The translations under genes and the position numbers were made by a program. Shown here in pieces: positions 50,612 through 57,851 of a stretch of DNA of 64,000 nucleotides. Source of the DNA: Rebecca billardiae RCC1528 (taxonomy: Eukaryota > Protista > Haptophyta); contig OZ251227.1 in assembly GCA_965240325.2 (NCBI GenBank), forward strand, positions 1,736,001 through 1,800,000, written 5' to 3'. Position 1 is the first letter of the stretch. Every line of letters begins with the position of its first letter. The notes beneath the pieces were generated by a model. The model worked only from the letters and a program-made list of their open reading frames with translations. It was not told the origin of the DNA and did not search any database.

Positions 50612-51660
50612 ATCAGCAGCGCATATCATTCATCATATATCATCATCTGACGAATCATCATCGATCATCGCGCTCATAGTTTAAGTAGTTACAGGGTCCC
50701 CATCAATCAACAATAATTTAGTGATTCGGACATGCTACTGCTGATTTTTACTGACTACGGCTGCTGCTGACGATGTGAGATGGGCCAGCGGCTGGCACAG
50801 TAGCGCCATAGGCCTTATATATATATTACAGTACTCCTCGGATGACGACAGGAACTGAGGAAGTGGTAGTATATATATAGTGGCAGCGAGCGGCCCGGAG
50901 CGGCGCGGCTAGCTGCATGTAGCTAGGGCTGGCGGCTTGCGGAGTACAGCAGCTCAACCCGACAACCGACTAGCGGTTGCCGGTTAGCTCTGACTAGTCT
51001 GCGTCTGAACATGAGGTCCACGGCCAGCCCCCGCCGTGATATTATTATTAATGGCGCACGCCCCCCCCCCCGAAAGGTCTGAGCGTGAGCGAAAGCCGGG
51101 GGGGGGGCGGCGCACGTGCTCCGCAAAATCAAAAAGAGGATGCGCGCAGGATTTTGGGGATTTTTCGGTAGGTGGCCACCGCGTATGAGTGGATATCGCT
51201 GCCGCAATGATTGCGTTTGTAGTAGATGCTAATTTTAACGATAGTAACACTTAGGGGAATGCAGGGTGGAATAGCACATAACACCAGCCGTGTGTTAGAA
51301 CATTCCGTCATAGTAATAAGATGCCTGAATTGTAAGAGCCTGAAACAGCTCGCCAACCATAGAAACGATAGGTTGGGTCGTCAGCTTTGATTCACGCGCT
51401 TCTGAAAAACAGCGTTTTAGATTAGACGCATCCCTCTTCTCTGAAGAGAACTGCGCGCTAGAATAGTGTGGTGAGTGTGTCCTGGACAGCCTGCTGAGCG
51501 GAAAGGTCAATAATCACGGTTGTGATTCAAGATTCCTCACCCCGTATTGCCAACTGATTCAAAGCCAATGCGGGTATGAATCGACGCGTTTGTGCTCTAT
51601 CTGCGATCAATAAGAGCTCTCTGATTCAAATGGGTGTACGCTGTCCTGGACAGACTCTGA

Positions 51661-54600
51661 TCAATGATCATGAGAGCTGTGTGCGTCTCTTATTCTTGTT
51701 ATCCATAAGCACCACGCGCTCAGCTGGTTGCCGCTGTGTGCACAGCGGGGCACGCCGAGGGAAGGGGAAGCGCCGAGAGGCGAGCGCGGTAGTCGCGCGG
51801 GGTGGAGTGGGCAGTTTCAGCCCACGCCGCTGCGCACCGCTCACCGCCCACCGCACTGCACCGCACCGCCACACTGCGCACGCGCCGCCGCACCGGCCGT
51901 GCGCGCCGCGCGCCGTGCCCGTGGGGCGGCGCGCGCGGCGCGGCGCGGCGCGCGGCGGCCGCTGCCGCAGCCTCGCGCCACGGCGCTGCTGCGGCGCCGT
52001 GCGCGGGTGCTCGCACGAGCGCGCGATGCGCACGGCGCGCGAGCCCTCCCCACCCCCCTTCCGCCCGCGCCGCGCGCCAACCCCCTCGCCACGCCGTGCA
52101 TGCGCGTACCTCAGCCTGAGCTCCCGCAGCCTGCAGGTGCGGAGCGCCTCTGCCAGCGCTGTGCCGGAGACGTCCGTCAGCTGGTTGTGGCTGTGTGCAC
52201 AGCGGGGCACGCCGAGGGGAGGGGAAGCGCGGAGAGGCGAGCGAGGCGGTCGCGCGGGGTGGGTTGGGCAGTATCAGCCCACGCCGCTGCGCACCGCGCG
52301 CCGCCCACCGCACCGCACCGCCACGCTGCGCACGCGCCGCCGCAACGGCCGCGCGCGCCGCCCGCCGTGGGGCGGCGCGCGCGCCGCGGCGCGCGGCCGC
52401 GCGCGCCGGGCGCGGCCGTAGCTTCATGCGACGGCGCTGCTGCGGCGCGGCGTGCGGGTGCCCACCCTGCACACGGCGCGCGACCCCCTCCCTCCCACTC
52501 CAACGCACGCGCCGCCCGCCGCCCCCCTCGCCACGCCGTGCATGCGCGTACCTCAGGTCGAGCTGCTCCAGATGGTTCGTCAGGTAGAGCTCCTTTGCCA
52601 GCGCTGTGCCGGAGACGTCCGTCAGCTGGTTGTGGCTGTGTGCACAGCGGGGCACGCCGAGGGGAGGGGAAGCGCGGAGAGGCGAGCGAGGCGGTCGCGC
52701 GGGGTGGGTTGGGCAGTATCAGCCCACGCCGCTGCGCACCGCGCGCCGCCCACCGCACCGCACCGCCACGCTGCGCACGCGCCGCCGCAACGGCCGCGCG
52801 CGCCGCCCGCCGTGGGGCGGCGCGCGCGCCGCGGCGCGCGGCCGCGCGCGCCGGGCGCGGCCGTAGCTTCATGCGACGGCGCTGCTGCGGCGCGGCGTGC
52901 GGGTGCCCACCCTGCACACGGCGCGCGACCCCCTCCCTCCCACTCCAACGCACGCGCCGCCCGCCGCCCCCCTCGCCACGCCGTGCGTGCGCGTACCTCA
53001 GCCTGAGCTCCCGCAGCCTGCAGGTGCGGAGCGCCTCTGCCAGCGCTGTGCTGGAGACGTCCGTCAGCTGGTTGTGGCTGTGTGCACAGCGGGGCACGCC
53101 GAGGGGAGGGGAAGCGCGGAGAGGCGAGCGAGGCGGTCGCGCGGGGTGGGTTGGGCAGTATCAGCCCACGCCGCTGCGCACCGCGCGCCGCCCACCGCAC
53201 CGCACCGCCACGCTGCGCACGCGCCGCCGCAACGGCCGCGCACGCCGCCCGCCGTGGGGCGGCGCGCGCGCCGCGGCGCGCGGCCGCGCGCGCCGGGCGC
53301 GGCCGCAGCTTCATGCGACGGCGCTGCTGCGGCGCGGCGTGCGGGTGCCCACCCTGCACACGGCGCGCGACCCCCTCCCTCCCACTCCAACGCACGCGCC
53401 GCCCGCCGCCCCCCTCGCCACGCCGTGCATGCGCGTACCTCAGGTCGAGCTGCTTCAGATGGTTCGTCAGGTAGAGCGCCTTTGCCAGCGCTGTGCCGGA
53501 GACGTCCGTCAGCTGGTTGTGGCTGTGTGCACAGCGGAGGCACGCCGAGGGGAGGGGAAGCGCGGAGAGGCGAGCGCGAGGATCGCACGGGGTGGGGTCG
53601 ACGGTGTCAGCCCACGCCGCACCGCACCGCACCGCACTGCACCGCACCGCCACGCTGCATACGCACCGCCACACCGGCCGCGCGCGCCGCGCGCCGCGGT
53701 GCGCGCGTGGCACGGCCGCAGCTTCGTGCGACGGCGCTGCTGTGACGCGGCGGGCAGGTGCCCACCCTGCACACGGCGCACGACCCGTCCTTTTTCCCTC
53801 CGCCTCACGCGCCTCGCGCCGCCCGCCCCCCTCGCCGCGCCATGCGTGCGCGTACCTCAGCCTGAGCTCCCACAGCCTGCAGGTGCGGAGCGCCTCTGCC
53901 AGCGCTGTGCCGGAGACGTCCGTCAGCTTGCTGGAGCTGTGTGCACAGCGAAGGCACGCCGAGGGGAGGGGAAGCGCGGAGAGGCGAGCGAGGCGGTCGC
54001 GCGGGGTGGGTTGGGCAGTGTCAGCCCACGCCGCTGCGCACCTCGCGCCGCCCACCGCACCGCACCGCCACGCTGCGCACGCGCCGCCGCAACGGCCGCG
54101 CGCGCCGCCCGCCGTGGGGCGGCGCGCGCGCCGCGGCGCGCGCGCCGGGCGCGGCCGCAGCTTAATGCGACGGCGCTGCTGCGGCGCGGCGTGCGGGTGC
54201 CCACCCTGCACACGGCGCGCGACCCCCTCCCTCCCACTCCAACGCACGCGCCGCCCGCCGCCCCCCTCGCCACGCCGTGCATGCGCGTACCTCAGGCTGA
54301 GCCTCCGCAGCGAGGTGTTGGTGCGGAGCACCTCCGCCAGCGCTGTGCCGGAGACGTCCGTCAGCTGGTTGTGGCTGTGTGCACAGCGGAGGCACGCCAA
54401 GGGAAGGGGAAGCGCGGAGAGGCGAGCACAGAGGTCGCGCGGGGTGGGGGCGGTGGTGTCAGCCCACGCCGCACCGCACCACGCGCCACGCCGCGCACCG
54501 CACCGCACCGCTGCGCAGGCGCCGCCACACGCCGAGGGGCGGCGCGCGCGCCGCGCGGCGAGGGCGCCGGCCGCGGCCGCAGCCTCGCGCCACGGCGCAG

Positions 54601-57600
54601 CTGCGGCGCCGTGCGTGGGTGCTCGCACGTGCGCGCGATGCGCACGGCGCGCGACCCGCCCTTCCCTCACTCCACCTCACGCGCCACCCGCCTCCCGCCT
54701 CGCCGCGCCGTGCGTGCGCCTACCCCAGGTAGAGCGTCTGCTCCAGCCAGGTGTTGGTGCGGAGCACTTCCGCCAGCGCTGTGCCGGAGACGTCCGTCAG
54801 CTGGTTGTGGCTGTGTGCACAGCGGGGCACGCCGAGGGAAGGGGAAGCGCGGAGAGGCGAGCGCGGCGGTCGCGCGGGATGGGGTGGGCAGTGTCAGCCC
54901 ACGCCGCTGCGCACCATGCATCGCGCACCGCACCGCACTGCACCGCTGCGCGCCGCCACACGCCAAGGGGCGGCGCGCGCGCCGCGCGGCGAACGCGCCG
55001 GGCGCGGCCGCAGCCTCGCGCGACGGCGCTGCTGCGGCGCCGTGCACGGGTGCTCGCACGTGCGCGCGATGCACACGGCGCGCGACCCCCACCCAAACCC
55101 CCCAACTCCACCGCACGCGCCGCGCGCCGCCCCCTCGCCGCGCCGTGCGTGCGCGTACCTAAGGTCGAGCTCCCACCTCAGGTCGATATCCCACAGCGAG
55201 GTGCTCAGGTCGAGCTCCCACAGCGAGGTGTTGGTGCGGAGCGCCTCCTCCAGCGCTGTGCCGGAGACGTCCGTCAGCTGGTTGTGGCTGTGTGCACAGC
55301 GGGGCACGCCGAGGGAAGGGGAAGCGCCGAGAGGCGAGCGCGATGGTTGCACGGGGTGGAATGGGTGGTGTGAGTCCAAGCCGCTGCGCACCACGCGCCG
55401 CGCCGCGCACCGCACCGCCCACCGCACTGCACCGCCACGCTGCGCACGCGCCGCAAAATCGGCCGCGCGCGCCGCCCGCCGTGGGGCGGCGCGCGCTGCC
55501 GCAGCCTCGCGCGACGGCGCTGCTGCGGCGCCGTGCGCGGGTGCTCGCACGTGCGCGCAATGTGCACGGCGCGCGAGCCTCCCTCCCACCACTCCATCGC
55601 CCGCGTCGCGCGCCCTCCGCCTCGCCCCACCGTGCGTGCGCGTACCTCAGGCTGAGCCTCCGAAGCGAGGTGTTGGTGCGGAGCGCCTCCCCCAGCGCTG
55701 AGACGTCCGTCAGCTGGTTGCCGCTGTGTGCACAGCGGGGGCACGCAGAGGGGAGAGGAAGCGCGGAGAGGCGAGCGCGGTGATCGCGCGGGGTGGGGTG
55801 GGCAGTGTCAGTCCACGTCGCTGCGCACCACGCACCGCCCACCGCACCGCACCGCCACGCTGCGCACGCGCCGCCGCGCCGGCCGCGCGCACCGCCCGCC
55901 GTGGGGTGACGCGCGATGCGGGGCGCGCGTCGGGCGCGGCCGCAGCCTCGTGCGACGGTGCTGCTGCGGCGCCGTGCGCGGGTGCACACGCGGGTGCAAG
56001 CGCTGCACACGGCGCGCGACACGTCCTTCCCCCACTCCGTCGCACGCGCCGCGCGCCGCCCCCCTCGCCCCACAGTGCGTGCGCGTACTTCAGGTGGAAA
56101 TTCTCCAGGCGGCAGCTGTCCGCCTGCAGCGCCTGCGACAGCAGCCGCACACACTCGTTGCCCACGCCCGTCTCGTCGAGATCGAGCGTTGTCAGCTTGG
56201 CACTGTGCGCAACGAGGTGCGCAACCGCCTGCGCGTGCTCCGCCACGTCCGTCCACGTCCGACACTTCACCGTCTTCTGCAGCACCATCAGCACATCTGC
56301 TGAGCCCACGTTCGCATAGCGCGCGAGCGCCTCGAGCTGCTCCACAGAGGCGCTGACTGGAGGCGGCGCCGTGCGCGGCTGCTCCGCTGCTGAGCGAACG
56401 GGCGGCGCCGCGTGCGGCGCGACCTGCTCCGCAGCGGCGTGGAAGGGTGGCGCCGCCGCGTGCGGCTGCTCCGCAGCGGCGCAGACGGGCGGCGCCGCCG
56501 CGCGCGGCTGCTCCGCAGCGGCGCGGACGGGCGGCGCCGCACGCGGCGCCGCCTCTGCACCCGCCTTGCGCCTCGCCTCCTCCGCAGCCGCGCGCTCTGC
56601 CTCTGCAGCCGCCGTGCGCCCCTCGCTGACTGGCCGCTCGTCACCCCCCGGCTCCATCATCGAGCGCAGTTCGATCCTCGCGGAAGCAGCCTGCGGTCGC
56701 AGTGCGGCAGAGTCCGACCACATGCCCGCGAGCAGCTCGTGCAGGGCCTGCTCGTGGTGGTGCACAGGCGCGCTGAGCCTCGGCCGCGCGCCTTGGATGA
56801 TCGCGTTCGTGAGCACGAACGGATCGTGGTTGGCGACGTTGCTGAAGAGCGTCTCGCCGGAAAGCATGTACGCGAGCACGATGCTGGCGCTGAACACATC
56901 GGATGGTGGAGAAGGCTTCGTCGCGCCACGCGCAACCTCAGGTGCCATGTAGCCAGCTGTGCCGCGCGGGCCAACGCTCCCGCTCGACGACGACAGGCGC
57001 AGCCCTTGCTCGCGCATCGTCTCAGATATCAAGGCGAGGCCGAAATCGGCGAGCTTGGCCACGCCGCCAGCATAGATGAGCACGTTCTCCGGCTTGATGT
57101 CACCGTGCGTCACGCCGTGCCTGTGCAGGAATGCAAGCGCACACATGATCTCGCCCGCAATTCGGAAGAAGGTGCGCGTCACGCCCGGCAGCGCAACGTC
57201 AGACCCGAACGCGGCCGTGCGAGCGGCTCCGCTCCCCAGGAGCGATCGCAGGGATCCGTGCTCGGCGAGCTCGAGCACCAGCCAGACCTCGCCATCGTCG
57301 GCATGGTTGACCACACCGAGAAGCTGCACGATGTGCGGATGGCGCAGCCGACTGAGCGCGTCGAGCTCGCGCTTGGCAGTGCGTGCTGTCGCGTCGTCGT
57401 CGGTCGGCACCTGCTTCACGGCGACCTCGAGCCCCTCAGGCTGAAGGGAAGCTCTGCGGACACACCCAAATGCCCCGCGGCCGAGCGGCCGGCCTTGCGC
57501 GATGGAGAGGTCGGCGACCTCAAACGTGCGCGTGTGCGCTGACGACCAGGGGTCCTGCGCCTGGTCGCGCGCCGCCTCCCACTCGCGAACGGCATCTCGC

Positions 57601-57851
57601 ATCGCCACGTTGACAGCAAGGCCGAAGCACTCGGTCTCCTCGTTCGCGAGAGGCTGTCGGCATATGGGGCACGTGACGCACGTCGCATCGTCATCATCGT
57701 CATCATCGCTACGGCGGGAGCGAACCCTCCTGCGGTGCTCTTCTATCGCAGCACGCTCGAACGTGTGCCCGCACGGCGTGGTTATCGGCTCCTCCGGCGG
57801 CTCGAGCGTCAGCGGGCAGATGCACGGTGCTGTCGGTGCGAGTCGGGCCAT
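51661..57851 (-). CDS. U-box / Ser-Thr kinase / RI-like LRR protein, 11 exons (57851-56089, 55723-55646, 55287-55159, 54810-54724, 54374-54291, 53936-53856, 53522-53439, 53077-52997, 52635-52552, 52190-52110, 51733-51661), ~874 aa
   Basis: U-box CPLTLE...CGHTFERAAI...CPICRQPL...VNVAMRDAVREW; kinase GRGAFG, VAVK, HGDIKPEN, DFG, APE. Then exons bounded by CACACAG| and |GTA, each encoding xNQLTDVSGTALAxxLxxxxxLxxLxL. The summed exon length of 2625 nt is an open frame ending in TGA. Confidence 0.88.
51734..56088 (-). repeat. Tandem array of ten intron(+LRR exon) units, period ~417-487 bp
   Basis: Recurring CGTCCGTCAGCTGGTTGTGGCTGTGTGCACAGCGG. Introns 52191-52551, 52636-52996 and 53078-53438 are each 361 bp and differ at only a few positions. 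Confidence 0.95.
56360..56560 (-). repeat. Coding minisatellite (~42 nt; AAPPVxAAAEQPx) in the kinase-LRR linker
   Basis: About five imperfect copies in the translated exon 1. Confidence 0.85.

Follow-up and report, generated by a model that had tools for sequence, protein, structure and literature searches.

Leucine-rich repeat arrays with homologous introns, a uniform exon framework and hypervariable codons in the haptophyte Rebecca billardiae

The introns of a predicted receptor-like gene in the haptophyte alga Rebecca billardiae RCC1528 look more conserved than the exons that they separate, which raises the question of how such a pattern could arise and whether it holds for the exons as a whole. 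The gene lies on the minus strand at 51661-57851 of a 64,000-nt stretch of DNA (contig C10, GenBank OZ251227.1, positions 1736001-1800000 in an assembly of 72 Mb and 41 contigs), referred to here as the window, and carries a C-terminal array of leucine-rich repeats (LRRs) behind a half with a U-box and a protein kinase. A survey of about 49 repeat units in nine arrays of the genome showed that conservation follows the order exon framework, intron, and binding-face codons. We consider it probable that the arrays consist of copied units of one intron plus one LRR exon, which are homogenised and reshuffled by recombination and in which the binding codons are kept diverse by selection.

Conservation of introns, exon framework and hypervariable codons

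A first-pass annotation of the window had described three consecutive 361-nt introns as nearly the same sequence, had added a fourth stretch of near-identical sequence at 53937-54290, and had noted that these introns flank alternating, clearly different exon types; alignment supports all three observations. Pairwise identities in a MAFFT alignment are 99.7% for introns I1 and I2, 99.4% for I1 and I3, and 99.2% for I2 and I3 (for labels and positions see Table 1), and the fourth intron, I4', is nearly as close. The 81-nt A exons and the 84-nt B exons share one sequence over their first ~40 nt and differ strongly over the last 40-47 nt, where about 20 substitutions and a 3-nt indel fall within 47 nt; among the youngest homologous exon copies, A2 and A3 are 1 nt apart and B1 and B2 are 2 nt apart. 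The annotation had overlooked the intron between A' and B1 (Id), which is not of the near-identical type (only 85%). Its summary that introns are more conserved than exons stands with regard to the variable codons only, and fails with regard to the exon framework, which is better conserved than the introns.

Nucleotide diversity (pi) across the arrays is about 0.01-0.02 in the exon framework and 0.15 in the introns, and rises to 0.5-0.76 at about seven beta-strand codons near the splice sites. Among the 36 canonical 84-nt exons, per-site diversity at framework codons is 0.00-0.06 at all three codon positions; codons 1, 21, 24, and 26 and the codon split by the intron reach 0.5-0.76 (codon 21 being a K/S dimorphism, AAG vs TCG), and codons 3, 10, and 23 fall between 0.2 and 0.5. 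The variable codons hug both exon ends because the phase-2 intron cuts through the beta strand, and intron diversity drops at the splice-site ends. As assigned from the repeat consensus, the hypervariable codons would be the x positions of the motif LxxLxLxxNxL, on the predicted LRR domain's concave face. W, Y, D, H, R, and G are frequent among the residues that they encode, no stop codon was seen among them, and G or C ends 96% of them, as in the framework. No association was found among codons 24, 26, the split codon and codon 1, even where these are 3-6 nt apart, and 44 of the 46 3' patches are unique. The low diversity of the framework extends to synonymous positions; at 16 fourfold-degenerate framework sites pi is 0.021, as compared to 0.158 in the introns adjoining the same exons, a 7-fold difference, and in 20000 randomly drawn sets of intron columns a value as low never occurred.

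A comparison of exon and intron trees was unfeasible, as the exons are nearly without informative sites outside the saturated hypervariable codons, and divergences were binned by intron divergence in its place. Divergence at the hypervariable sites is saturated (0.36-0.51) in each bin of upstream-intron divergence, including the bin below 2%, and framework divergence remains at ~1% until the introns exceed 15%. The paralogs L031 (contig C15) and L036 (contig C5) have about 3 kb in common; here the kinase exon shows 12 differences in 2169 nt (0.55%) and the introns are 0.6-1.1% divergent, and the two enclosed LRR exons diverge by 10.7% and 14.3%, with all of their differences at hypervariable sites. 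Over this tract, 21 of 42 hypervariable sites differ vs 18 of 3017 others (Fisher p = 1e-31), and 8 of the 13 changed codons differ at 2-3 nt. The same kind of contrast is found within the window, where the units [I4'+A'] and [I1+A3] differ at 5 of 21 hypervariable exon sites vs 5 of the 421 remaining sites (Fisher p = 3e-5). Between hypervariable and background differences, the transition/transversion ratio shows no significant contrast (p = 0.28). The simplest reading of these patterns is long-standing, codon-by-codon diversifying selection on a scaffold that is kept uniform by recombination.

Copying and exchange of units, and the alternatives weighed

The unit of intron plus exon occurs in about 49 copies in the genome, distributed over nine arrays on five contigs: the window array on C10, five arrays on C15 (L031 to L035), and one each on C5 (L036), C37 (L037), and C39 (L038). 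Units are spaced about 435-450 bp apart within the arrays, the copied unit measures about 442-445 bp, and every intron copy has the same codon phase and the same place within the repeat. The LRR module is joined to different partner halves, i.e., a U-box and a kinase in the window gene and L034, an EDR1/CTR1-like, peptidase-like domain (Pfam EDR1_CTR1_ARMC3_pept) and a kinase in L031, L032, and L036, and a 940-residue frame without a Pfam match in L037. While the window gene and L034 have 83% protein identity over exon 1, they have only about 81% DNA identity across the LRR module. The LRR module of L034, which sets in 486 nt before exon 1 ends and takes in the array, shares 92% DNA identity with that of L031 over 2653 nt; the kinases of these two genes, by contrast, reach only 34% identity, and the N-terminal domains are of different kinds (U-box vs EDR1/CTR1-like). 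First introns from different genes form one clade (99/97 support), which indicates that arrays have also been copied whole. One unit of the eight-unit array L033 (G000:C15:1004000-1013999, gene-oriented positions 2192-2433) has AT in place of GT at its donor site and is followed by a truncated intron; judging from these letters, it is probably an inactivated exon.

Duplication of a block of two units, [A-intron-B-intron], predicts that I2 should resemble Id or I0 (85-87%), whereas its closest relative is I1. The window introns form a single clade in the intron tree (100/99 support), nested by position as ((I1,I2),I3),I4', and intron position 133 has a derived A in I1 and I2 only, with G in I3, I4' and all outgroup introns. 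The argument of the first-pass annotation that duplication of a two-exon block cannot yield a single intron type is thus borne out: the placement of I2 as sister of I1, rather than with Id or I0, implies one or more non-reciprocal transfers that both begin and end within a unit of ~445 bp, and each scheme of unequal crossover or segmental duplication that we worked through needs at least one extra non-reciprocal step. Either I2 may have been converted by its neighbour I1, over a tract of about 390 nt that starts just past the A2 patch and extends ~40 nt into exon B2, or a copied A unit may have received the 47-nt B patch by conversion; the end points of both transfers lie in sequence common to all units, and the data fit either. 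Outside of the window, intron L031_7257 is chimeric. Over alignment columns 1-160 it shows 2 differences from its positional homologue L036_4880 and 27 from L031_6369, and over columns 161-320 it shows 49 differences from the former and 0 from the latter, which marks a conversion tract taken from the gene's own first intron.

These two cases, along with an LRR module that is common to unrelated N-terminal halves, also sustain the earlier proposal that the introns are homogenised by recombination. Its companion proposal, that the variable 3' halves move as cassettes, finds no support, given the uniqueness of nearly all 3' patches and the independence of the hypervariable codons, and block transfer of these patches was rejected. 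Donor cassettes were rejected for the A and B patches, as neither has a further copy anywhere in the genome; type B therefore appears to have arisen within the window gene. The B-type patch (..ELYLTNHLEQLDL; 52552-52598 and 53439-53485, minus strand) resembles an extra LxLxNxL strand, one residue short, located at the helix position.

Copying, recombination and selection would combine as follows. The gene would encode a cytosolic U-box–kinase protein with a C-terminal array of ribonuclease inhibitor (RNI)-type LRRs, each repeat being specified by a phase-2 mini-exon accompanied by a homologous, GC-rich intron of ~350 nt. The four near-identical introns belong to the youngest unit copies, produced by local tandem amplification, and at least one non-reciprocal transfer is required in the window array. 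Across the family, roughly 400 nt of intron and exon framework provide the homology for unequal crossover and ectopic conversion, both within and between genes, and about seven x-position codons would be kept diverse by diversifying selection on a putative ligand-binding face. As an outcome, young or homogenised introns would appear more conserved than the exons, even though the exon framework is the most conserved part. Expression of the gene and a function in recognition are presumed from its sequence.

Several observations weigh against this account. Duplication combined with selection at the protein level leaves the 7-fold lower diversity at fourfold-degenerate framework sites unexplained. 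Only very strong selection on point mutations could account for 50% difference at hypervariable sites on a background of 0.6%, with most changed codons altered at two or three positions. The contrast between A and B exons compares two repeat types and not divergence after copying. Identity among repeat copies could be inflated by mis-assignment of reads during polishing. Finally, a test similar to the pairwise homoplasy index (PHI) was not significant on the intron alignment (p = 0.85); 24% of intron site pairs fail the four-gamete test, and they do so at all distances, which leaves the PHI-like test powerless to localise exchange.

Two alternatives account for the diversity of the exons by other means, and we consider both to be unlikely, to about the same degree. 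Plain recent tandem duplication, after which A and B diverge by selected point mutation with no conversion or unequal exchange, fits the nested, position-ordered intron tree and its very low divergence, and adaptive substitution may far outrun neutral change in very large algal populations. However, the number of changes that separates the A and B patches sits between introns that differ at only 1-3 sites, intermediates between A and B were not found in the genome, and B occurs twice, behind a divergent and behind a near-identical intron, which implies that patch or intron was copied separately; in addition, the paralogs show clean conversion tracts and module exchange. Targeted diversification, by contrast, posits a mutagenic or (micro-)templated process, germline or somatic, that rewrites the beta-strand codons and leaves the rest untouched. 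It would accommodate the concentration of changes at hypervariable sites in the ~3-kb paralogous tract, mostly at two or three positions of a codon, as well as the statistical independence of neighbouring hypervariable codons, the near-universal uniqueness of 3' patches and the freezing of the exon framework even at fourfold-degenerate sites. Nevertheless, the window array revealed neither donor cassettes nor pseudo-exons within its introns, the predominance of G or C at third positions and the lack of stops are as expected after long selection, and the transition/transversion ratio matches the background. A single assembly cannot reveal somatic change, and somatic recombination was not found in the brown-algal analogue (PMC11378527). 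There is a small residual chance that a directed process, and not selection alone, diversifies the codons.

Two further alternatives concern the introns themselves. An artefact of assembly or polishing, in which copies were homogenised by consensus collapse or mis-mapped reads, is conceivable for a 442-bp period at >99% identity, a kind of sequence in which polishing can blur copies; we judge it very unlikely, given that the copies keep private differences (at positions 10, 133, and 197 and an 8-nt indel) and distinct exons, that collapse would have homogenised the exon patches as well, that the pattern recurs between the separate contigs C15 and C5, and that an assembly of this contiguity suggests long reads that span the 2.3-kb array. 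The possibility raised in the first-pass annotation that the intron is an introner-like mobile element, repeatedly inserted, did not survive a genome-wide search, and we regard it as more improbable still. Its appeal is that the intron RNA, folded from end to end, can form a long hairpin with a G-rich 5' arm opposite a C-rich 3' arm, loosely like terminal inverted repeats. Genome-wide probes (whole intron, 5' 100 nt, 3' 100 nt, and the 3' splice site with adjoining framework) matched only the LRR arrays on C10, C15, C5, C37, and C39; matches elsewhere involve just the GC-rich low-complexity core, on both strands and at 68-87% identity. Since all copies are found at one codon phase and one position in the repeat, insertion as an introner is practically excluded, and the intron seems to spread only as part of the exon-plus-intron unit. 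Target-site duplications are undefinable, as the intron flanks are homologous exons. For the hairpin, end-to-end pairing is predicted at -257 kcal/mol, yet shuffled sequences are almost as stable (z = -2.3), and a consensus fold of 45 introns has a covariation term of -1.0 with compensatory pairs almost nil. A search of Rfam gave no match for the intron, and a functional intron RNA was rejected on the same three grounds.

Anatomy of the window gene

The gene comprises exon 1 and 10 further exons (Table 1), nine of which encode one LRR each; these measure 78-129 nt, in most cases 81 or 84 nt, and their lengths are always a multiple of three. All introns are GT..AG introns in phase 2, so that each LRR exon opens with base 3 of one split codon and closes with bases 1 and 2 of the next, and those between LRR exons measure 333-376 nt. 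Tandem Repeats Finder (TRF) describes the LRR region as a 442-bp repeat with about 8-9.5 copies, and the repeat consensus, xNQLTDVSGTALAEALRTNT(K/S)LQxLxLx, reads as an RNI-type LRR, one per exon. Exons were analysed singly, and their matches to Pfam LRR_6 are weak (E 0.046 and 0.092, profile positions 12-24), as the exon junction falls inside that profile. The GC content of the window is 0.60-0.78.

Table 1. Predicted exons and introns of the minus-strand gene at 51661-57851, in order of transcription (window positions).
Feature	Position	Strand	Description
Exon 1	56089..57851	-	U-box/RING, protein kinase, linker, LRR cap, first LRR; 587 codons + 2 nt, phase 2
LRR exon 2	55646..55723	-	78 nt, GNQLTDVSALGEALRTNTSLRRLSL
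LRR exon 3	55159..55287	-	129 nt, internal 27-nt duplication of beta-strand patch
LRR exon 4	54724..54810	-	87 nt; donor GTAGGC
LRR exon 5	54291..54374	-	84 nt, canonical ..RTNTSLRRLSL; weak LRR_6 match, exon residues 1-13
Intron I4'	53937..54290	-	354 nt; 98.3-98.6% identical to I1-I3; one 8-nt deletion
Exon A'	53856..53936	-	81 nt, ..TCRLWELRL; differs from A2/A3 only at codons 1-3 and one beta-strand codon
Intron Id	53523..53855	-	333 nt; 85% identical to I1-I3; long branch in intron tree
Exon B1	53439..53522	-	84 nt, ends ..LYLTNHLKQLDL / ..AKALYLTNHLKQLDL
Intron I3	53078..53438	-	361 nt
Exon A2	52997..53077	-	81 nt, ..RTCRLRELRL
Intron I2	52636..52996	-	361 nt; one site different from I1; block duplication fails to explain it
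Exon B2	52552..52635	-	84 nt, ..AKELYLTNHLEQLDL
Intron I1	52191..52551	-	361 nt; reference copy
Exon A3	52110..52190	-	81 nt
Intron I0	51734..52109	-	376 nt; 87% identical to I1-I3; 5' part is the intron type of paralogous arrays
Last exon	51661..51733	-	LRR-exon-like start (GNQLS..), then on to TGA stop

Exon 1 is an open frame from an ATG at 57851 to a donor, GTACGC, at 56088, with Pfam matches to Pkinase (E 7.7e-43), U-box (7.2e-5), and zf-RING_UBOX (9.7e-6). Its linker between kinase and LRR cap (56336-56620, minus strand) contains an Ala/Pro-rich 42-nt tandem repeat in about 4.9 copies and a 24-nt repeat. In exon 3, the tandem micro-duplication of 27 nt (TRF 55177-55230) lengthens the exon to its 129 nt (..TSLWELDLS TSLWDIDLR WELDL).

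Among proteins, exon 1 is closest to one of Pavlovales sp. CCMP2436 (48% identity) and to sequences in the JGI collection. One JGI homologue, P0003, lies on a transcript-like environmental contig of 2846 bp and has the order U-box–kinase–LRR and a precomputed LRR_6 assignment; its repeats are contiguous, which supports a spliced reading of the window gene, in which splicing of the LRR mini-exons is predicted. In a related organism, the transcript-like contig with the order U-box–kinase–LRR (L039; JGI 3300016802, contig Ga0186151_100789) has two 78-nt LRR units that are identical at the nucleotide level, and homogeneity of the repeats may thus extend beyond the R. billardiae genome. Exact-pattern scans of metagenome contigs did not find relatives of the unit. 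Approximately 550 nt downstream of the stop codon, at 51063-51108, a C12 run and a G10 run form an inverted repeat around a short spacer, which could be a hairpin or a transposon end.

Relation to known systems

The combination of uniform introns with variable exons has parallels in several systems. At MHC (major histocompatibility complex) loci, introns are more uniform or younger than the exons for the peptide-binding region, as recombination homogenises neutral flanks and selection keeps exon variants. However, the MHC pattern concerns allelic polymorphism at single loci, whereas the pattern described here concerns tandem repeats and paralogs in one assembly. LRRs of plant nucleotide-binding LRR proteins (NLRs) and receptor-like proteins (RLPs), such as the RPP8 family, combine diversifying selection on the x positions of the beta strand, the hypervariable and solvent-exposed residues of the motif xxLxLxx, with conversion between clustered paralogs. 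Plant LRR arrays are mostly located in large exons; by contrast, each repeat in R. billardiae has an intron of its own, and the introns therefore record exchanges.

[quoted passage not shown] The abrupt replacement of a short exon segment between conserved introns parallels the switch between A and B patches. The two systems differ in that ASSET was recognised by comparison of paralogous genes for secreted animal toxins, with no repeat scaffold, whereas here the switch affects an LRR strand within one gene.

The closest known system is that of the LRR arrays of brown-algal ROCO genes, which work alike, even though the genes described here are not ROCO genes. In Ectocarpus and Saccharina, these genes have one LRR per 72-nt exon, with phase-2 introns and exon shuffling; about four residues on the concave face are under positive selection, alternative splicing is a possible source of further diversity, and somatic recombination has so far not been found (PMC3341825, PMC11378527). 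Both have a near-identical scaffold, occur in physical clusters, carry a cytosolic signalling domain as partner, and have been proposed to serve as fast-evolving receptors. The R. billardiae arrays likewise have one LRR per short exon with phase-2 introns, vary at residues that would lie on the concave face (as positioned from the consensus) of a near-identical scaffold, and show shuffling of units between positions and genes, as seen in L031_7257, the incongruence between modules and partner halves, and I2. They differ in their partner domains, since Pfam finds a U-box with Pkinase or EDR1_CTR1_ARMC3_pept with Pkinase and no Roc or COR domain; in the repeat, which reads as RNI-type with 27-28 residues (81-84 nt) as opposed to the 24-residue type of brown algae; and in architecture and host, the array being C-terminal to a U-box–kinase or EDR1-like–kinase half of a haptophyte protein rather than to ROC-COR. 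Unlike in brown-algal ROCO genes, inverted or inactivated LRR exons were not seen in the introns of the window array. The terms "gene conversion" and "intron sequences" do not occur in PMC3341825 or PMC11378527, so that conservation of the introns is apparently not discussed there.

A kind of system already known from the candidate immune receptors of brown algae is thus extended by a haptophyte, which joins the few lineages that have LRR arrays with one repeat per exon, a clonal scaffold and a hypervariable binding face, and by two partner architectures that are new to it (U-box–kinase and EDR1-like–kinase). The homologous introns borne by the repeats serve as neutral tracers, which directly show movement of units and of whole LRR modules within and between genes as the binding-face codons stay diverse. 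With a contrast of 0.6% vs 50% within one tract and fourfold-site diversity so far below that of the introns, these arrays are well suited to the question of whether selection acts alone or together with a directed mechanism, a question that bears on receptor diversity in a unicellular alga that faces viruses and parasites.

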